A stretch of 63,599 nt of DNA, counting the filler, from Choristocarpus tenellus KU-1152 (Eukaryota > Protista > Phaeophyceae): NCBI GenBank assembly GCA_964200185.2. It is 12 parts of 12 records of this genome, joined end to end, with 100 filler letters (N's around TTAATTAATTAA, not from the genome) between each part and the next. Parts side by side here need not be neighbours in the genome. Positions count along the whole stretch, not along the records: positions 31,073 to 42,001 come from CAXNAD020002620.1; 11 more parts are not named here. One strand, given 5' to 3'. Below the pieces are notes generated by a model that did not search any database, was not told where the DNA came from, and worked only from the letters and a program-made list of their open reading frames with translations. The position numbers and the translations under genes were made by a program. Below are positions 31,073 to 42,101 of this stretch, piece after piece; position 1 is the stretch's first letter, and the number at the start of each line of letters is the position of its first letter.

Positions 31073-31143
31073 ATCCCAGTCAATTTTGGGTCAAGTCCAT
31101 CCTCAATGAAAAGCTCCATCCTCAATTATTGAAATCGGCTGTT
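31073..31143 (+). mobile_element. MITE family B right end, nested in a family A copy (31144-31192)
   Basis: Near-identical to 33949-34019 and ends CGGCTGTT. It is followed by AAAT-GGACAAAC...TTTCACTC, the family A right end. Confidence 0.85.
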
Positions 31144-31192
31144 AAATGGACAAACAGGGCAAAACTCTTACCCTCTTAAGATACTTTCACTC

Positions 31193-32800
31193 TTTGTTAG
31201 CTCCATCAATATTCCAGTAATTGATGCTGAAGTATTAGCCAAGGCCCAACATGATCAGTTTGGGGCATATTTTCAATATCTGGCAGACCCGAGTAATGCA
31301 ACATTACCCAATAAGGAAACGGCCTACACCATGTCATATTTTTTCACTTACGAGCGAGAGAATAAACTTCTACAATACCGATCTTACCAACCTGGTCATC
31401 TTCGAAAAAATGGAGAAGTTCGTGATCAGTTAGTAGCCCCAACAGAAGTCCAGGGTTTAATTTTACATGCCCTACATGACCATAAAGTTGCAGGCCATCT
31501 CGCTTTCAAGCACACGTTTGACCGCGTTAGAGATTGATTTTGGTGGTGGCCGACCTTACATAAAGATGTTAGGAAGTGGTGTGAAACTTGCCAGTCGTGT
31601 CAAAGACGGAAGACCTCTCACACTCCTACTCCACAACCTACTGGACATATACCTGTTACACGTCCATTTCAACGACTTGCTATTGACCTAGTTGAGTGCA
31701 GGACCACGTCAGACGGTGCAAGATATGTGTTATCCACGGTAGACCATCTTACAAGATTCGCAATCTTGGTTGGTGTTGCAAATAAACAAGAAAAAACCGT
31801 GGCTAAGACTCTGGTCAATCGCATTTTTTCCAACTTTGGTTCTCCTGAATCACTCTACTCTAACCAAGACAGATAATTTGAGAAGAAAATCCTGGCTGAG
31901 TTACGTAATGTGTACGGATATCATAAAACCAAGACGGTGGCATGATATGTATCGACCTCAAGGCAATAATAGTATATGTGAACGAATTCATTCCATGATG
32001 CATGGTATGTAGGACATGTATTCAAATATGGACCAATCTGACTGGGCCTCAATATTGACCTTTTTACAGCCAGCACACAATACAGCCTATAGTAACACTG
32101 TTCACGAAAATCCTTTTTTTTTCTCATGTTTTGAAGGCGCCCAATTTTATGAATTAATCTTATTTTGGGGGTCCCTGAGGCTACCCCCATAACCGTACAA
32201 GAATGCAGTATGAGAACATGGGAAAATTTTCAGCTAGCTTACGAATTAGCCGGGCGCAATATTGGTGAGATGACTCTAAGGAACAAATAAATCTAAGAAC
32301 GTGAACCATAAACTCCCACTATATGAACCCGGAGATAAATTGTGCCTTTACAGACCACATATTTCAGCTGATGCATCGAACCCCAAGTTATTGTCCCCAT
32401 GGAGAGGACTTTATGAAGTGAAGGCACATGTAACACCCGTTGTTTATCGTGTAAAACGCTTGGAAGACCAATGTGAAGTGACAGTTCATGTGGTCAGACT
32501 TAAACCCTGTAAGGAAGGAACAGCCACTGAACTTGACATAGATGCCCTTAATTCACTAGTCTTAGGGCAGGTAATACCCGAACGAAAACTTGATTAGGGG
32601 TCGAAGACACAGCCAACTATTGGGTCGTACAATGTAGAGAGCATTGTTGACCATGAGCGAGGTGTAGGAAGAAAGACCACTCGCCTTCAAGGATATTCAC
32701 TGGCAGTGATGTATGGCGCAAACCCGCTGAAACATCTGAATGTGCAGAGATGATCGCAACCTATAGGGAAGAGAACCAGTTGGACCTCCCTAGTGTAAGC
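31193..32800 (+). mobile_element. Decayed Ty3/Gypsy integrase with C-terminal chromodomain
   Basis: HHCC zinc finger (HDHKVAGH...CETCQSC), PFQRLAIDLV, VDHLTRF, FGSPESLYSN, YRPQGN..CER, a GPY/F-like LSPWRGLYEV and chromodomain-like YNVESIVDH. Stops and frameshifts. Confidence 0.92.
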
Positions 32801-33832
32801 CCCACTGACCAAGCGAATTGTCATAAAGAAAGACACCTGCCACTACAACAGCTGGCGAAATTGAACTACCGCCAACCGGATGTCCACCTAATAGCAACCA
32901 AGCCTCCTTTAATACTTGTGATATCCCTCCTTGTGTACCAGAAAGTGTGATTAATGCCTCTATACTAGTGGGTTGCCGGGCTGGTGAATTGCCACCAGAG
33001 TACACAGATAGGGAAGTATTTCTTTTTCACTACCAAGATGGCTGAAGCAACACCGATAAATTCTTAAAGACCATACCATGGCTCAGTCTGGGTGGTATTT
33101 CGAGCTTATCTATGAGATGACTTGGGGCTCGTCGGGTAGAAAGCTCTTATCGGGAGACACAAACACAGGTTGTTCCCGTCTGTGAGAAGCATGCATACTA
33201 TTCAAAATATTATTACAAGATGTATAAAATGAAATTTTATTTCACACAAAACAAACAAATGCGCATACAACAAATATTTACAGTCCAACTTTCTGGTTGC
33301 CCAAGCACCTTGGAGTTAAGTTGTTGTACAAGAGGTGATAGTAAGAAGATATGATGAGTTTTCCAATCACGCTTGACACCATCCCTACACAACACTCCCC
33401 ATAGATGACTTGATGTACCAAAGCTGGGGTGATAATGAGCTTCATCCACTCACACATAGGAGACAGGCAGGTCCATGCCATTTTTCTCACTGCGCTTTCC
33501 ACCCGTTAGCGCAGATTTTCTCTTGGACTAGAATGCGACCTACGTCTGATCACCACTAGTGCTCCACCTTTTCATTTTTTCTTTCCTCTGAGTTGATTCA
33601 ACAAGGGTTTTTTTATTTTCCTCCCAAAGACCTGTGGAACTTGGTCCCGGCCTCTGAGGTGGGAGAGTCCAGTCTGGAGATTGTGATTGCCCCCTTTTGT
33701 AGAGAACTTTGGCGACTTGACGCCTCCACAGGTTGTAAATTTCCTTAAAAGAGAGGTCAAACTCTACTACTACTGTCTAGTTCATCTCTATCTGGGAACA
33801 ATCTTGCGGTGATGTTCTATTCAATCATATTT

Positions 33833-34019
33833 AACAGCCGATTTCAAAAATTGAGGATGGAGCTTTTCATTGAGGATGACTGGGATAAAGTGACGATATG
33901 TATTTTTTGTAAATGTAAAAATACAAAATATATATATATCGACACTTTATCCCAGTCAATTTTGGGTCAAGCCCATCCTCAATGAAAAGCTCCATCCTCA
34001 ATTTTTGAAATCGGCTGTT
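33833..34019. mobile_element. MITE family B (Sola1-like), full copy, 187 bp
   Basis: TIRs of over 40 bp, AACAGCCGATTTCAAAAATTGAGGATGGAGCTTTTCATTGAGGATG. 4-bp TSD ATTT (33829-33832, 34020-34023). Confidence 0.88.
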
Positions 34020-34267
34020 ATTTCTAGGAAAAAAATCGACCACCAAAAAACAAAATGGCGACAGAACGGACAATTACCCTATCGCTCATTTTTTGTTGTC
34101 ATCGATTTTCTTCCTATTATTAAGATTGAAGTGCTCTTTTGAACAAGATTGCTCCCTCATCAGAGATGGCTATACCTAGATAGGACTTTACAACTATTGA
34201 TTGGATTGGGTTCTTGGACAAACTAAACTTCAGGTACAGTCATACACCACTTACTTCTAATGTTGGA

Positions 34268-35209
34268 ATGAGTTCATCCATGGCTACGAACAACTGTTTT
34301 GACGAGGAGAAAGTATCAAAAGACAATGTGTTCCAAGTGGTAGTGACAGGGGGATCCAAGGGCATTGGTCGTGCCTGTGTGGATGCGTTCGCTCGGCGCG
34401 GTCATCGTGTCCTGTTTACGTTTTGCTCAGATGCAGATGCCGCGTCTTCTCTCGAGTGTTCCTATGAGTCGGGGTTAGTTCAAGGATGCCAACTGGATCA
34501 AGGAGACTTCAACAGTGTGCGTTTATTCGCGTCACATGTGGAGGAGTGGCGAGGGGGTAAAACTGTTGCAGTTCTGATCAATAACGCTGCCCTCGGAGTT
34601 GCCACAGTAAGCCAATACGAGGGAAATTCAGGGAATGGGCGCGATGCCACTAGTGAACAGGATGAGGATTGGCGGAGGGCGGAGGAGGACATGGCGCTCA
34701 TGAGAGTGAACGCGCTGGGACCAGTATGGGTGACTGAGTCGTTGCTCTCGATGATGACTCCAACAATCAGCGATGATACAAGTTCTGGATTCCTGGCAAA
34801 ACCTGGGCGATCTACTGTCCTATTCATAGGATCTGTTGGAGGCGGTTCACAGGCTGTTTTCCCAGGATTCCGCGTAGCGGATGCCATGAGCAAAGCGGCT
34901 CTTGCATATGCCTCAAAGCACTTCGCGGCCCGGAACATTCACCGTGAGTGTGTCAATTTTCTCTCCCTTTGCCCTGGGGCGACCTTGACAGACATGTTTC
35001 GAGCAAGCACTTTGAGCAAACTTGCGATGCCGGAGCTATTGGTTGACACGCTTCCACAGGGTAGCCTCCTACAACCCGAGGAGATTGCAGAGGCAGTTTG
35101 GTGGTTATGCACGTGTCCAGCCGCCAGAATCTTCCATGGTGGCATCTTGGATGCTTCAGCAGGTCTTGCCGTCAGGCCCGGGTTACTGACGGAGTTTAAT
35201 GGTTCGTAA
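34268..35209 (+). CDS. Intronless short-chain dehydrogenase/reductase (313 aa) with atypical DxxxK active site
   Basis: TGGSKGIG, LINNAALG, VNALGP, IGSVGG, DAMSK at the YxxxK position, CPGATLTDMF, PEEIAEAV. First ATG at 34268, TAA at 35207-35209. Confidence 0.93.
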   Translation: MSSSMATNNCFDEEKVSKDNVFQVVVTGGSKGIGRACVDAFARRGHRVLFTFCSDADAASSLECSYESGLVQGCQLDQGDFNSVRLFASHVEEWRGGKTVAVLINNAALGVATVSQYEGNSGNGRDATSEQDEDWRRAEEDMALMRVNALGPVWVTESLLSMMTPTISDDTSSGFLAKPGRSTVLFIGSVGGGSQAVFPGFRVADAMSKAALAYASKHFAARNIHRECVNFLSLCPGATLTDMFRASTLSKLAMPELLVDTLPQGSLLQPEEIAEAVWWLCTCPAARIFHGGILDASAGLAVRPGLLTEFNGS

Positions 35210-36841
35210 GGTATCAGATACACTGAGATTCCTTATTGCATCAGATTTTTTTTTGTGGTTTTGAGTGCAGCGTACCTGGTGCGTGATTCATGCGCTTAAT
35301 GTAGCCTATCGTTAGAGGTGGCCCTCGACTCAGTCTGATATCAACTATTGCTTCGGGTTTGGAGGGAAAGATTAGCCCTCTCATACACCATGGTGGGAGG
35401 GTGTGTGCAGCGAAACTGGATTTGGTTTCAAGGTGGTAATATGCCTTCATGCTGTGTAGCTGAGGAGGGATTGGGTGAATTGTGTAATGGGATAACTATG
35501 CATGTAGATGAACCTCCTGTTTCTAACTTTTTAACTCCTAAAGTTTTGGAGCTGGAATAGACAGGTACTATACAAATTTATAGAAATAGAGGCTCTGTCC
35601 CTATTTCGACCATGTTGAACCTTGCTCTTTATCTTCATACCTTGTCATGAGAAGCTTGTCTGCACACTGTGTATGCCCCATACAAACACACTGCGTACAA
35701 CAATCATTTGTTTAATACCAATCTGTAGGAGAAAATCTACTTTGAAGGAACAGAGACACCATCTCTTGTAGGTGTGTGATCAAAAGGTGTATCTGTTACA
35801 AATTGCTGAGACTTTTTAGAGTAGATATGCAGTTGAAGTAACTGGGGGTCAGCCACAATATATGGGGCTAAACGTTCGCAGAGATGAAACCACTCAAACC
35901 CGTAGAGAATCCATTACAGAGCAGTGAATACAGGTGATATACTCTCGAGAAACAAGTTGTTGAGTGCTGGGGAGGATGGTAGAAATTGTGGAGAGATTCA
36001 GGATATATTTATGTTCATCGGATGCCAATGCCAACATAATCTGGGGTGTAACATGTCGTATCGAACAGATTCTGCCCTCAGAACCTCAGGGGAAAAAAGG
36101 TTGCTGACATCACATCAAGTCAGGAAGCATGAGGTACAAGGTAGATAGGTACATAAGCAGGTTGTACTGAGTGGAACCATGTACGAGGAGGGTCAGTCTT
36201 GGCCCCTTGTGAAGCTTGTGCAACATACACCATGCTTGAAAAAGAGGTAGCCCTGCTGATGAGGGGGCAGCAGCAGAATAGAAGAATACCCGTGATTTAG
36301 GTGAAAGCAGCCCCACAATACTCAAAACCACATATACCACAAAGCAGTCATAGGGGTCGGTCCATATATCTCAAAGTCACCCCCCTCTTGAATGGTATCA
36401 CTTATTTCTACACAGTACCATTACCCTTCATTGTGATTTGAAAGATGGCCCATCAACCTGTGGATTACCTGATTCAGGTTTGTTCTTGGTTCAAATAGTA
36501 TCAGTATATGTCGTGTGTTTGTGACTTAGCATTTAGGGGAAGGTTGTTCTGTACCCAATAATTTGACCCCTGCCGAAACAGCTCCAGACTCCCCCACTTT
36601 TCATCCTTCCCTGATGAAGGAGGTTATAAAGTGATCTGAACCTTCCTCAATGCCAAAATCAACGATACTTACCGTCTGGGAGCTGGAAGATACCTAAAAA
36701 CACAACAGACCCTATCAAGTGATTCACCCATATAGAGTATATCACAACAAAATGCGTTGCGTGTCTGTTCGTGTGTGTGTGTGTGTGTGAAAAATAAACG
36801 TGAAATAGATGAATGACATTACTACTCAAAGTAGAAATCGT

Positions 36842-39800
36842 TTAAACGTTCCTGCTCTTCAGTGTTCTGAACAAAGCCAACCAGGGTTCAATGTCGAACA
36901 CATTAGCCTTGCGGAGCTTCTTCTGAAGAACAGAGGCTGGGATCAGGCGCAGCAATTGTTCACGCACCCAAACTCCTGCTCTGCTTGTGAGCTGTCCCAG
37001 TTTCATCTGCTTCCGGGAGTCACCGTGAATCCTTGTGGTGTGGGCACGCCTCGCCCTCTGTCAGAGCCCCACGACAGATATGAAAAGAGGTGTTGAGAGT
37101 CAGGTGTATGTGACACTACATAAATAGCACATCCTAAAGACAAAGTAGAAGGATGCATTATCTAACTACAGAAAAAAAACCTCAGGGCTACTCTATTCGC
37201 GCAATTCATTTAAACTGCCTCTAGTATACACATACATCTCCAGGAAAGATCAAATAACTGTGGCGATATCCTAATGTTTACGAAGTGAAGTTGCCGGGTC
37301 AGGCTCGAAAGACTTTTGGTAGCAATAACAAGAGACTTGATGCATTTGTGATGAGTGACCTTGGCTCCCTTCCCATATGGGAGCAGCCACGACTAGCATC
37401 CCAAAGGGAGCATCCTGAGGTCTCCAAAAGAATTGTATTAGACACCTGATGTTGGTTCTGGTAGAGGAACTTCGCTTTGCAGGAAAAAACGATAAAACCC
37501 AAGGGCCAGCTGCTTCTAGTTATAAGGAGTAACATCGTTCTGAACACTCTGTTACTACTCCAGAGTACCACTGTTGAGTGCGAAAACAACACCAGCATCA
37601 ACTTGGTATTGTCAGTGCACATATACTCTGGATTATTATATACAAGTATACCCAAAGGCATAAGAGATGGGAAGCGCGATTTTCTTTTGGTTAAGGCTGT
37701 GACACATCTAATTCAACACACAGGCACTGTTCAAAGAAAACATCTCAACCCCTAACCGAGCTAGTGGAATACGTTTCTCTATATAAATAATTTGTGTCGG
37801 ATGTGGTGATACTTCCTAGCGGCCAAACATGTTTGAAGAGACAAAACTTTTGGTCCTCTGAAGGTTGGGCAAACTCAGGGCGTGGGTGGTGCATTTAAGA
37901 CACGGTATGCAAAATGGTATACGTACTACAATTGATTTGAAAAAGGGACAAACTTGGAGTCTTTTCATCCTTCCATTCTTCTTTACCTCGTAACAGTAAA
38001 ACGCCTCCACTTGGCCGTCAGGTTCGTTCCAGTACTTCTTCAACAACACGGCCAGCACAAAGGCATCCTCAATTGCCATGCATGCTCCCTGGCCATTGTT
38101 TGGAGTCACAGCATGGCATGCATCACCCAATAGGGTCACATGGCTGGAGCTCCACCTGTGTCATGGTGTACGGTGGAACGAATCGCGTAAGAGGGTGCTG
38201 TACATGTAGTACACTTAGGCGAAATACATGGACGCAGGATAAACATCTCTCACTGACCACTGCGCTCCTCACCCGCATCCAATCCCAAGTACTATAAACT
38301 CTTTTCTCACCTCTGCAGGGTTCCCCTCTCACCTGGGTAGCGGATCGCAGTCCTGGATGCAATGGACGTACTTGCCCGCGGCCTCTGAAACCGAGGCAAA
38401 CGTTTTCAAGGGCTCAGGCCACCTGGCCTGTGGCGGAAGCGACGGCGGAACCTTCTCACCCGGGGGATCGTCCAGTTGCTTCACGAACCAGTATCCAGTC
38501 TCGAGGGCACCGTCCAGGTACCCCCATGAGAAGCGAATGCGGTTGCCGTAAACAATGCTCATCGACTCGGGCTGGCGGCGCTCCTCCGCCTTAAACAGCT
38601 CACGTAGTGTATCAGAGCCCGCACTCCCCTCTCGCAGGTCTAAAACGCCACGATAACAGGTCTCACCGCCATCCCGGGCCCTTCTTGCTGACGAACACCC
38701 AGTAACAGCCTCCCTGCAGACGGAGCGAATGCCATCCGCTCCAACAAGGACACGGCAAGACAGATTTGGGGCATCGGCAACGGATGCAGTCGCGGAATTT
38801 TTCCCTGGTGCTAACTCCTCCACACCCGACACAGAGGATCCGTAGGAGATCGTTCCGTCACGGAGGAGGGCCGTCAAAGGTGCCATCACTGCTTGTCTTC
38901 CCACTAGCCGGAACGGCTCGCCCTCTCCTTCCACGACAGTCTCCATGTCCACACACTTGAGGACCTCAAGGCCTCCTGCCTCATTGGTGGTCTTGCTCAT
39001 GTAGACGGTTCGAACCGGGTACGTCTTCCGGTCCCAGAAGTCAGAGGGAGTACCATCCACCTCGCACCCAACACCCAGCTCCTTGAGGATCTTTGCCGCT
39101 GATGGCCACAGAGCCAGATCTGCCCCAGTTTCACTATTGCCAGCTGACGACCTCTCGAGGATCTAGGGCAAGGGTTAGGGTATCAAGCGAGGGCGTTGGG
39201 GGGAATCAGGAGCGCTACAACCAAGGCAAGTATCTGGGGGGGGGGGAAGGTGGCAGTTGTCCATTTGGGGCCCATTTTTACATGTTGCGATTTCTGGGTG
39301 ATTTGGTTGCATGCTTCAGATGGATAAGGTATCTGCACTTCTCCTGGTCAGGACCCATATGGACACCCCGGTGTAGAACTCTCCCCCCCACCAAATACTT
39401 TGACCCAATACCAGTGCTATAATTCCAGGAGTGTTGCGTAAAATGTGAGTCCAAGTCAAAAGTAATATCCGAGGTCACTGCAATGTGACTATCTGAACCG
39501 TGCGTGCAGTTTCACAACTTTATTTTATTTTGGTTTATTTATTTTTATTTATTTTATGGTTTGTGAATATCGATAGCTCTATGTTTCCGGTTCGGAGGCA
39601 CTGCCGGAATTAAGAAGTAATCACATCATCCGTGCACCCATCAACACGATATATTCCCATCATTACTGTCTGCAGAAACCTGCACCCCATATCCTATTTC
39701 TCAGTGACTGACCTCCCTGTGAAACTGTTGCTGAGCATACGTACCTTAAAAGGGATGTCGAGCTCTTGCAAACAGGCCCCAAGGACCAGCCCTCCAATGC

Positions 39801-41637
39801 CACCTCCGACCACGACAATTCCACTTGACCTGTCGCCATTCTCCTGTCCTGCTCTCATAGTTTCTGGCGACTTTTGTGGGGTCTTGGGTTTGCCCCGAAT
39901 CAACATGCTCCACAAGAACGGGTAGATTGCAAGGCAGCGCACATGGAGGGATCTAGAGAACACCACTGCATAGAGAGCAGTAAGTGGGGACGACTGCTGG
40001 GTAGCAAGGAGAGATACCTCTCTGATAAGGTACTCGGCAAACACCATGAGGACCACACAGGGCGCATGCTTCAAACACTGAACAATGAGTGGACTCAGGT
40101 TGTAGGGGCGGGTCTGGCCCCTTGAGGGATTGAAAGCCAAAGTGATGGACAAAGCCCAAGGAGAAGATAGGAGAATGGCCAGTAGTGTTGAAAAGCGGCA
40201 GGTGCCTACTGCCCAAAGGCACACCGCTGACAGATAGGCTAGGATGTACCCAAGCCCAAGTAGCCTGCTCAGGGGAAAGGGCACAGTTGATTGGTGATCT
40301 CGAATGCTCACATCAGCAGGCTACAACACCTTCCTGTTTCTATCCATACTTGAACGTGTGACTATCATGAAAAAAATGAGGCAAGAAAACATAGAGTGAA
40401 AACCTGAGTAGGCTCCCACCTGCAGCTGGACTCTTCGCCCAGAAGCACTGGCAAGGTGTTCTTACCACCCAGCCAGTCCGGCCGTCGGTCAACCATGTTA
40501 AGGGCCATGAAGAGGCTGAACTTTAGGAAGGTTGAGGGCAAAACCAGAGCAGCCAAATCTCTATGGAGGATGACCGCTGGCATCGCAAAGTCTTGGGACT
40601 GCACCATTGCCGCAAATTGTGGAAGAAAAAAATTCATCACGATTGGAGCTGCTATCTCACCAAGGCCACGGTGGTTGAATTTGAAAGGTGGGCAGCTGTA
40701 CTGATAGGCAAAGAAAATCATGAGGCTGCCGAGAGGCCAACAGTGAGAGGGTAAGGCAAATAGAAGGACAAAAATAGCTCCGCCAAGGCATGTGTTCCCC
40801 AGATACAAGCACTCCTTCAATGTGATATCTCCTGTCACCAGCACTTTCGACCCTCCTGTCATTTTACTCGAGTGAATATTGAGTTGATCTGATGGAAAGT
40901 CATAGTACTCCCCTGAACAAAAAGAATGATCACATTTGCAGTCAAATTTGGTTAAAGGGACATCGAAGCTGGTATGATTGTTGTTTGCTTTTGCAAATAT
41001 TGAGACTTCCCTTCACAAATAATGTCTTGGACTCAAGTACTCAGAGGGAAACGTGCGGATGACATACACCCTTGTACATAACCATCTCCACCTTTGTGAA
41101 CCTAACCACGTTTAGTCATCGGAGAAATGCTTTTTTCTATGCTGTCTTTGATAACATGGTTAAGAACAAACACAAACCACCTTTCCTTTCTTCACGTGCA
41201 GTCTGACAGTGTTCCCAACTATGCTTCGTATCCCTAAGGCAGCATCATTGATGCAATGAAGTGATGCGTTCAAACCAAAGTGTTGTACGACTGATTCATT
41301 AACAGACCTGCAACTGAGGTTGGGGGTGGGGAGGATACGCAAATGAAATTCATGTCTTATATGCCGACTGTAGACTTCGTAACGGGTCAGGGCTAAGATG
41401 GTCGAGGGGCGACATTTGCTATAACGTCTCACCAAGCAAGTGAGCGACAAGTTGACATAAGAAGACAAAGGCCCATCCCTCTAAAAAGCCGATGGCGTCA
41501 AACGACGATCCACTGTCTAGGGCAACAGTTGCACCAGCTGCATAAGTGACAGCGGAAAACACTGCCATCTTGAGCCGGGCAAGCCTCAGTATCATCTCAA
41601 TGCGCTGCCACACTCCATTCCTCTTTGCTCCAGTCAT
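36842..41637 (-). CDS. UbiA/MenA-like prenyltransferase fused to FAD-dependent monooxygenase (810 aa, 6 exons)
   Basis: Exons 41637-41433, 40912-40420, 40264-39745, 39162-38333, 38155-37987 and 37057-36842. All are GT-AG and phase-consistent (2433 nt, ending TAA). UbiA motifs GEYYDFPSD..TGGS, YSCPPFKFNHRGLGE, NMVDRRPD..GKNTLPV. Monooxygenase motifs GGGIGG, GADGIRS, LLGDACHAVTPNNGQGACMAIEDA. Confidence 0.92.
39226..39402. mobile_element. MITE-like family C with CAA(A)GTATCTGG-polyG termini (intron 3 of the fusion gene)
   Basis: CAAGTATCTGGGGG... / ...CCCCACCAAATACTTTG. Related ends at 3335-3350, 8596-8610, 14390-14416 and 28329-28352. No clean TSD. Confidence 0.55.
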
Positions 41638-42101
41638 CCTGAGCTGCTAAGAACACACCAGAAAAGCTTCAGGGAAAGGTATGTGTCTCCTCATGACCAT
41701 TCCAACCTAAACCTAAAACCTTGACATCAACCATGGTATGAAATGAAAATGTGAAAATATTCGGTAATTTCTCCTACTTAATTAGGTTTTTCCGCAACAC
41801 ATCCAAAAATGTGAGAGGGATAATAAATAGTACATAAAAAATGGGTTGTGGTTAGTAGGTTGTATTGTTGTTACGTAGTGAAGGCTAAAACTATCTTCAA
41901 TCGTAATGTTGAATGAGTGGTTAGAAGGAATACACCCACTACGAGGGCTCCTTTGATCCTCGTAGTTATAACCTCAACACCTTTGGGATGGAAAGTTTTG
42001 GNNNNNNNNNNNNNNNNNNNNNNNNNNNNNNNNNNNNNNNNNNNNTTAATTAATTAANNNNNNNNNNNNNNNNNNNNNNNNNNNNNNNNNNNNNNNNNNN
42101 N

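Follow-up and report, generated by a model that had tools for sequence, protein, structure and literature searches.

A predicted UbiA-type prenyltransferase–flavin monooxygenase fusion, patchily conserved across eukaryotes and recurrently linked to an EboF orthologue

The brown alga Choristocarpus tenellus KU-1152 (GenBank assembly GCA_964200185.2) carries a gene that encodes a UbiA-type domain and a flavin monooxygenase domain in one protein. The gene lies on the minus strand at 36842-41637 of the window, by which we mean the whole 63,599-nucleotide stretch of DNA that was analysed; the piece considered here, from contig CAXNAD020002620.1, spans 31073-42001. The fusion is a genuine single-chain protein and is conserved; its distribution across eukaryotes is rare and patchy, and includes non-photosynthetic parasites and amoebae. 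It is recurrently linked, across supergroups, with an atypical short-chain dehydrogenase/reductase (SDR) and an orthologue of EboF. We consider it probable on balance that the protein is one polytopic membrane enzyme that prenylates a ring and then oxygenates the product, within a small conserved specialised pathway together with the SDR and EboF. An earlier note made from the DNA sequence had proposed prenylation followed by flavin-dependent oxygenation, and this is still the most economical reading, both halves looking catalytically intact.

The gene was found to consist of six exons, with all introns of the GT..AG type and no internal stops, both when the strand was read directly and in a scripted check. 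The 811-residue product is identical to the deposited C. tenellus protein CAM9385567.1 (P0001), an 'unnamed protein product'. The earlier note had described a six-exon open frame of 810 residues. The exon number and the open frame stand, while the length depends on a tandem NAGNAG acceptor (gAGcAG) at 40265-40269 (-), at the start of exon 3: the first AG, taken in the deposited model, gives 811 residues, and the second (40264) gives 810. The alternatives differ by a single Ser and both frames are open. Profile searches were run on single exons or on the deposited protein, rather than on the joined exons.

Exon 1 (41433-41637 (-)) contains the start codon, an N-terminal amphipathic helix and the first two transmembrane helices (TM1 and TM2) of the UbiA domain, as read from the strand and with helices placed by the structural model; 12 nt (four codons) separate the ATG from an in-frame stop on its 5' side, which leaves no space for a targeting peptide. 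The UbiA core, with both Asp-rich motifs and a family-specific TGGSK, is encoded by exon 2 (40420-40912 (-); Pfam UbiA match at 40368-40862, E 2.9e-14, on the exon alone). Exon 3 (39745-40267 (-)) spans residues 233-407 within a single open reading frame (ORF; 39694-40311) and encodes TM7 to TM9, an extra helix TM10 (residues 329-356), a basic linker and the GGGIGG motif (39807-39790). The middle of a class A monooxygenase follows in exon 4 (38333-39162 (-)), which includes the GADG 'DG' motif (38742-38731) and is assigned by Pfam and NCBIfam matches to the exon. Exon 5 (37987-38155 (-)) holds the GD motif GDACHAVTPNNGQG (from 38127) and the FAD/substrate-site loop, with a Pfam FAD_binding_3 match of 1.8e-6 on the exon alone alongside NCBIfam matches. 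The C-terminal monooxygenase helices and the stop codon TAA are in exon 6 (36842-37057 (-)), placed by identity to the deposited protein; this tail is kept in all homologues. A (CA)n microsatellite occurs at about 36776-36795 (-), some 50 bases 3' of the stop codon, in the presumed 3' untranslated region.

As the earlier note had claimed, the last UbiA helices run into GGGIGG within a single exon, with no stop between the domains and the frame open throughout. The location of the junction within one exon means that the fusion is not a gene-model artefact. An annotation or assembly error that joined two adjacent genes might account for the single-half entries that exist in databases (P0028, P0048, P0067, P0086, P0087 and P0112). 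However, many half-size entries come from short contigs or bear a 'partial' label, the pattern that truncated gene models would give. The Plasmodiophora orthologue (PBRA_006090) is one intronless fused ORF of 766 residues, and the linker helices and motifs are kept across the junction in approximately 30 full-length homologues from independent assemblies. With the junction exon itself uninterrupted, the chance of such an error is negligible. When used as a phmmer query, the junction-exon ORF retrieves full-length fusions aligned across the junction, and a transcript-like Logan contig of 2870 nt contains an uninterrupted 871-residue fusion ORF. In the case of Tribonema gayanum, Trinity isoform P0070 has the UbiA part and a monooxygenase fragment in one ORF, and a longer isoform (P0199) stops within the linker.

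Both Pfam domains that the earlier note had expected are found above cut-off in the one deposited protein: UbiA (PF01040) at 66.4 bits (cut-off 34.2; exon 2 by itself gives 53.4 bits) and FAD_binding_3 (PF01494) at 50.7 bits (cut-off 22). As matches, both scores are far beyond chance. The motifs listed in that note are likewise present, including the unusual form of the first Asp-rich motif, which reads GEYYDFPSD (residues 69-77; 40912-40887); the second reads NMVDRRPD (residues 207-214; 40499-40476). Both sit in predicted cytosolic loops, after TM2 and TM6 respectively, as the UbiA superfamily requires, and D73, D77, N207, D210 and D214 are invariant or nearly so among 31 homologues. The best NCBIfam models of the N-terminal half are 1,4-dihydroxy-2-naphthoate (DHNA) polyprenyltransferases, the top one (NF004749) scoring 72.7 bits against a cut-off of 277. 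No NCBIfam MenA model reached its equivalog threshold with either the N-terminal half or exon 2; TIGR00751 (menA) gave 17.5 bits on exon 2 alone (cut-off 102.15) and is absent from the matches of the whole half. A phmmer search of the UbiA half found no PDB match at E up to 1. The family profile of this half does reach UBIAD1, the best match, and digeranylgeranylglyceryl phosphate (DGGGP) synthase in the PDB, at E about 1e-3. A model of the domain (predicted local distance difference test, pLDDT, 88) superposes over ~300 residues on DGGGPS, AfUbiA, ApUbiA and UBIAD1, and Foldseek places 7bpu/6m31, 4tq3, 4od4 and 8djk at E 2e-6 to 1e-4, with template-modelling (TM) scores by target of 0.69-0.75. 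The model has the nine-transmembrane-helix UbiA fold, to which residues 325-383 are an addition. The N-terminal half is most likely, as we infer its chemistry, a MenA/UBIAD1-like intramembrane prenyltransferase of the UbiA superfamily.

The C-terminal half carries the three flavoprotein fingerprints noted earlier, as GGGIGG (residues 387-392), GADG (residues 548-551; 38742-38731) and GDACH (residues 694-698; 38127-38113). Its model adopts the two-domain fold of p-hydroxybenzoate hydroxylase, with Foldseek matches to TrlE (8rqh; E 1e-18, TM-score by target 0.86), HpxO (0.81-0.83) and 3-hydroxybenzoate 6-hydroxylase (3HB6H; 0.77-0.81). The nearest solved relatives are TrlE, NicC, HpxO, salicylate hydroxylase, 3HB6H, 4-hydroxybenzoate 1-hydroxylase, vanillate 1-hydroxylase, PhzS and VibMO1; going by the PDB molecule names, many of these hydroxylate phenolic acids, several with loss of CO2. 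By its motifs and matches, the C-terminal half is a class A FAD/NAD(P)H monooxygenase, closest to phenol hydroxylases and decarboxylative ring hydroxylases. Two more specific identities were rejected. Searched with the exons, the UbiH/UbiF/COQ6 models (TIGR01988/TIGR01989) score far too low (17.9 and 17.7 bits against 224.65; COQ6, 11.5-16.4 against 489.3). A zeaxanthin epoxidase is equally excluded, as the deposited protein contains no FHA domain (PF00498) and no N-terminal extension; the zeaxanthin epoxidases among the database matches are 25-28% identical and carry PF00498.

We also considered whether the flavin domain might act as something other than an oxygenase, either as an NAD(P)H-dependent reductase of a quinone or prenyl chain, in the manner of AbsH3 or geranylgeranyl reductase, or as a non-catalytic scaffold. 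AbsH3, a FAD-dependent reductase of the same fold, is indeed among the matches, and bacterial fusions of a MenA-like domain to a flavodoxin-like reductase indicate that the joining of prenyltransferase and redox domains is a recurrent theme. However, the class A fingerprints GxGxxG, DG and GD are invariant across the family and nearly all close structural relatives are true oxygenases, which makes this alternative hardly credible.

The full-length protein was predicted by AlphaFold with a pLDDT of 89.2 and a predicted TM-score (pTM) of 0.89, and this confident model suggests that the two domains pack in a defined manner. Hydropathy and charge counts give ten membrane segments. The N-terminus, loops 2-3, 4-5, 6-7 and 8-9, and the linker after TM10 contain 22 Lys and Arg residues, as opposed to 2 in the opposite loops; according to the positive-inside rule, this split places the Asp-rich loops and the flavin domain on the same, cytosolic side. 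Judging from the charge distribution, the extra segment (residues 329-356, the conserved 'RC.P.YP' region) would serve to return the chain to the cytosolic face. Neither alignment nor model shows an N-terminal extension for plastid or mitochondrial import, the first helix starting at residue 8. A substrate tunnel between the two domains is presumed. The earlier note had proposed channelling of a prenylated intermediate, which stays conjectural, with indirect backing from the two-domain model (pTM 0.89) and from a predicted topology in which the two active sites face the same side of the membrane.

An exhaustive phmmer search of the junction exon against 1.84 billion representative sequences returned only 20 proteins, several of them 749-890 residues long and aligned across the junction, while a word-indexed search with the deposited protein found ~45 family members with both Pfam domains. 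Brown-algal members occur in Ectocarpus (named 'Flavoprotein Monooxygenase'), Scytosiphon, Hapterophycus and Nemacystus, and other ochrophyte members in Phaeothamnion, Chrysoparadoxa and Tribonema. Beyond the ochrophytes, the family includes a Hildenbrandia-like red alga, Plasmodiophora brassicae, the amoebozoan Planoprotostelium and the zoosporic fungi Paraphysoderma and Hyaloraphidium. That Plasmodiophora, an amoebozoan and zoosporic fungi also possess the fusion weakens the tie that the earlier note had drawn to the prenylated and meroterpenoid metabolites of brown algae. Residues invariant over the 31 aligned homologues include TGG87-89, N207, D210, D214, K219, G387/G389/G392, D550-G551 and G694-D695, as well as the family-specific TGGS(K/R)VL motif and H300. 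Going by this alignment, both halves are under selection and their catalytic sites look intact.

A quick maximum-likelihood tree places the PX-clade ochrophytes in one group, within which Choristocarpus branches as sister to the remaining brown algae, matching the species tree. Fungi and Amoebozoa form a further group, and a third comprises Plasmodiophora, the red alga and 17 unnamed sequences. That the tree mirrors species order in the brown algae suggests that the gene is old and vertically inherited there. Among third-clade members, L010 (12730-13578) and L011 (14637-15440 and 12643-13089) share an NSRP1_N neighbour, and one of the two adjoins a B-box/CCT (CONSTANS-like) gene, which hints at a green-lineage origin of that large clade. 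The earlier note had not recognised the architecture. Databases have in fact held it under automatic names since the Ectocarpus genome: UniProt has the Planoprotostelium and Plasmodiophora entries, and one Joint Genome Institute (JGI) name covers both halves ('1,4-dihydroxy-2-naphthoate octaprenyltransferase / 2-polyprenyl-6-methoxyphenol hydroxylase-like'). Its lack of recognition holds for the literature, where full-text searches found no paper describing or characterising the fusion. In the ESM Atlas there is no large cluster with the fused architecture, only stand-alone flavin monooxygenases with scores below 0.9. A second, different prenyltransferase-redox fusion was also encountered (P0076 and P0078-P0082): these ~506-residue proteins, probably bacterial and from metagenomes and genomes, combine a MenA-like UbiA domain with a flavodoxin-like NAD(P)H quinone reductase (PF02525/PF03358).

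The SDR and EboF neighbours, which are absent from the earlier note, are the best clue to function. In C. tenellus, an intronless SDR gene (34214-35209 (+), first ATG at 34265; Pfam adh_short 4.5e-18) lies tail-to-tail with the fusion gene. An orthologue occupies the same position beside the Ectocarpus fusion (46% identity, E 2e-110; L005 18893-20242 (-)), and in the fungus Hyaloraphidium another is located 4.7 kb away from the fusion gene (35% identity, E 2e-48; L008 17422-18639 (+)). The usual TGxxxGxG cofactor motif is present. At the YxxxK site, the two brown algae have D-A-M-S-K and Hyaloraphidium has D-L-M-S-K; the linked SDR thus appears to lack the catalytic Tyr. The orthologues also carry large lineage-specific insertions. 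The SDR is a probable pathway partner of the fusion enzyme.

The next gene in the Ectocarpus locus belongs to the PF01663 phosphodiesterase family. Orthologues are found directly upstream of the fusion in Plasmodiophora (55-60% identity by tblastx) and in a metagenomic eukaryotic contig (L011). The Plasmodiophora ORF shares 42-48% identity with proteins from Bacteroidota, Planctomycetota and Verrucomicrobiota, and in Maribacter the bacterial protein is encoded by the final gene of a textbook eboA-F operon. This match to EboF of a genuine eboABCDEF operon identifies the PF01663 neighbour as an EboF orthologue. EboF, an enzyme of the alkaline-phosphatase family, belongs to the thallusin (ebo) pathway. 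Homologues of eboF were previously described in Phaeophyceae, Phaeothamnion, Vaucheria, P. brassicae and red algae, with the other ebo genes missing from those eukaryotes and the function of eboF left open (Yurchenko et al. 2016, PMC5133447, section 3.5). That study does not mention the UbiA-monooxygenase neighbour, and the linkage of the fusion to eukaryotic eboF seems not to have been noted before. A co-localised core set of eboB, eboC, eboE and eboF was not found; in Ectocarpus, Plasmodiophora and L011, only the EboF orthologue is linked.

The Hyaloraphidium fusion gene has a divergent cytochrome P450 neighbour (L008 7564-9481 (-)), and an NTF2/SnoaL-like gene with two riboflavin-synthesis genes (Lum_binding, DHBP_synthase) lies at L008 18734-21743; these may represent a larger cluster or a coincidence. 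In the C. tenellus piece, a 98-residue ORF between the SDR and the contig end (32301-32597 (+)) has weak matches to retrotransposon integrase C-terminal and Tf2-1 SH3 domains (PF22938, PF24626) and is probably a decayed Ty3/gypsy-type element. The interval 31073-34200 contains no PF01663 gene or Pyr4-like cyclase, only this integrase remnant and short ORFs.

In the mechanism that we favour, the UbiA domain (residues 1 to about 325) would transfer the chain of a prenyl diphosphate to a ring acceptor, using both Mg-diphosphate-binding Asp-rich motifs. The tenth helix segment (residues 329-356) and the basic linker would bring the chain back to the cytosolic face, where the class A monooxygenase (residues 383-811), docked on the prenyltransferase, could oxygenate the lipid-anchored product as it exits. 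The likeliest oxygenation would be ring hydroxylation, possibly ipso/decarboxylative, to yield a prenylated quinol-type compound; ring hydroxylation is preferred because the nearest relatives of the C-terminal half are ring hydroxylases. The SDR and EboF partners would probably prepare or finish the non-terpenoid ring. Several observations weigh against this mechanism. The first Asp-rich motif is non-canonical, with GE in place of ND, and is conserved as such family-wide. In Planoprotostelium, Paraphysoderma, Tribonema and Chrysoparadoxa, neither EboF nor the SDR is encoded within 10 kb of the fusion. The C. tenellus piece has the SDR only and no PF01663 (EboF) gene, as its contig stops 3.1 kb beyond the SDR. 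No biochemically characterised member of the family was found, and ring hydroxylation and prenyl epoxidation are inseparable by sequence alone.

The end product would be a specialised prenylated metabolite, as opposed to a bulk respiratory or photosynthetic quinone. A role in primary metabolism, in which a COQ2-like enzyme or a DHNA prenyltransferase of MenA/ABC4 type is joined to the ring hydroxylase that follows it in a phylloquinone, menaquinone or ubiquinone-like pathway, would be in keeping with the DHNA polyprenyltransferase models as best NCBIfam matches of the N-terminal half, with UBIAD1 as its best PDB profile match, and with the JGI automatic names of DHNA octaprenyltransferase/methoxyphenol hydroxylase type. 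However, the fusion falls far below the cut-offs for MenA (72.7 bits against 277) and UbiH/COQ6 (17.9 against 224.65), has a rare and patchy spread that includes non-photosynthetic parasites and amoebae, and possesses no plastid or mitochondrial presequence. A core quinone role is very unlikely on the basis of these scores, this distribution and the missing targeting extension. The gene is moreover linked to the EboF-like gene and the odd SDR, not to quinone-pathway genes.

Epoxidation of the prenyl chain is the main rival to ring hydroxylation. In this case, the flavin domain would epoxidise a double bond of the newly attached chain and prime it for cyclisation, either as part of the prenyltransferase, flavin monooxygenase epoxidase and Pyr4-type cyclase series of fungal and bacterial meroterpenoid pathways or in a manner akin to the action of zeaxanthin epoxidase on a carotenoid ring. 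Prenyl epoxidation ahead of cyclisation is typically carried out by flavin monooxygenases (PMC13307353), which favours this possibility, as do the zeaxanthin epoxidases among the nearest long relatives and the indole/olefin epoxidases CtdE, PhqK and FqzB among the structural matches. Among stand-alone proteins, the one most closely related to the UbiA half, P0072 from Saccharothrix (30% identity, E 4e-20), is furthermore encoded in a cluster with an adjoining Pyr4-family terpene cyclase and FAD monooxygenase. Against this, no Pyr4-like cyclase was called within 10 kb of the fusion in nine eukaryotic loci, nor in the C. tenellus piece, and such a cyclase was found only beside the bacterial P0072; this result applies to the surroundings of the fusion. 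Ring hydroxylases provide the best matches in both sequence and structure, and the FHA domain of zeaxanthin-epoxidase-type proteins is absent from the fusion. The Saccharothrix monooxygenase is unrelated to that of the fusion beyond the GD motif. We thus regard chain epoxidation as unlikely, and ring hydroxylation is retained as the preferred outcome.

The limited similarity of the Saccharothrix monooxygenase, confined to the GD motif, also led to its rejection as an ancestor of the C-terminal half. The S. violaceirubra cluster (L002 4060-13141) encodes a sugar-phosphate cyclase resembling dehydroquinate synthase, a cupin, a zinc-dependent alcohol dehydrogenase, an SDR, a glyoxalase, the UbiA protein P0072, the Pyr4-family terpene cyclase and the FAD monooxygenase. 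Its gene content suggests an uncharacterised bacterial cluster for a meroterpenoid with a cyclitol-derived ring as its base, and is a further pointer to prenylation of a ring derived from a sugar or cyclitol. The genomic context of a bacterial relative of the monooxygenase half (P0141, Sandaracinaceae) is uninformative.

A wider reading of the EboF linkage can be put forward tentatively, although we consider it doubtful at present. The fusion, the eukaryotic EboF and the Tyr-less SDR might together constitute an old, patchily kept eukaryotic pathway that is mechanistically akin to the bacterial thallusin/saccharoquinoline route. A phosphorylated cyclitol- or sugar-derived ring would be dephosphorylated, aromatised, prenylated and oxygenated. 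Brown algae and other eukaryotes that form zoospores would in this way produce a prenylated metabolite of their own, with a signalling or protective role. If true, this would explain why eukaryotic eboF is retained without the rest of the operon. The UbiA half itself is not EboC, an identity rejected when BLASTP of the N-terminal half against Maribacter EboC (L052 4307-5203) found no similarity (best E 6.2). The eukaryotic set would accordingly be analogous, not homologous, at the prenylation step.

Prenylation followed by flavin-dependent oxygenation is at the core of quinone and meroterpenoid biosynthesis. Separate proteins perform the two steps in every described case that we found, and the fusion would be a natural single-chain version. 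It offers a ready model of how an intramembrane prenyltransferase may hand a substrate over to a soluble-type monooxygenase, and could serve as an engineering part. The linkage provides the first genomic context for eukaryotic eboF genes, which are now tied to thallusin via the bacterial ebo genes. It also yields a testable hypothesis, namely that a prenylated, oxygenated small molecule is made endogenously in brown algae and several protists, along a route that is partly homologous. Tractable systems are at hand: genetics is available in Ectocarpus, and the Plasmodiophora gene has no introns.

Among known systems, the N-terminal half is most readily compared with the MenA/UBIAD1 branch, with which it shares the nine-helix UbiA fold (TM-score by target 0.75 to UBIAD1, 8djk, and DGGGPS) and its best NCBIfam and PDB-profile matches. 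The second motif, N-x-x-D-x-x-x-D-x-x-x-G-K-x-T-L, also resembles that of MenA-type enzymes. However, the fusion is far under every MenA equivalog cut-off and its first motif is GExxDxxxD as opposed to NDxxDxxxD. It further differs in its family-specific invariant TGGS(K/R)VL motif, the extra C-terminal helix segment and the covalently joined monooxygenase. In the case of the C-terminal half, the salicylate hydroxylase/NicC/HpxO/3HB6H/TrlE group shares the GxGxxG, DG and GD motifs, TM-scores by target of 0.79-0.86 and sequence E-values of 1e-12 to 7e-19. Several members of the group perform ipso (decarboxylative) hydroxylation of phenolic acids, and 3HB6H, according to its PDB title, uses a bound lipid. 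In contrast to these enzymes, to which it is only 20-26% identical, the fusion monooxygenase is tethered to a membrane enzyme and has insertions, for example at residues 440-480 and 640-660.

The ebo/thallusin system similarly brings EboF together with a UbiA-family prenyltransferase, and an EboF orthologue adjoins the fusion in three eukaryotic lineages. A 2026 preprint ties the ebo genes to thallusin, a meroterpenoid seaweed morphogen, and describes farnesylation by EboC of a hydroxyquinoline built from a cyclitol and aspartate, the product being a prenylated (farnesylated, cyclised) hydroxyquinoline-derived signal (bioRxiv 10.64898/2026.05.21.724671). Unlike the fusion locus, the ebo operon contains neither a flavin monooxygenase nor an SDR; conversely, the UbiA half is distinct from EboC, and EboA, B, D and E were not seen at the eukaryotic loci and are reported absent (PMC5133447). 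A further parallel is provided by two-enzyme pairs such as COQ2 followed by COQ6 in ubiquinone synthesis, or VibP1 with VibO/VibMO1, in which the order of reactions is the order of domains in the fusion. Other pairs of a UbiA enzyme and a flavin monooxygenase are XimB/XimD, AuaA/AuaG and Pyr6/Pyr5. VibP1 is a UbiA-type 4-hydroxybenzoate prenyltransferase of vibralactone-producing fungi (PMC10257657), and one of the solved structures nearest to the C-terminal half is that of VibMO1 (8gsm). The halves of the fusion are not orthologous to these pairs, and whereas the paired enzymes are separate polypeptides in all described cases, the fusion unites both domains in one chain.

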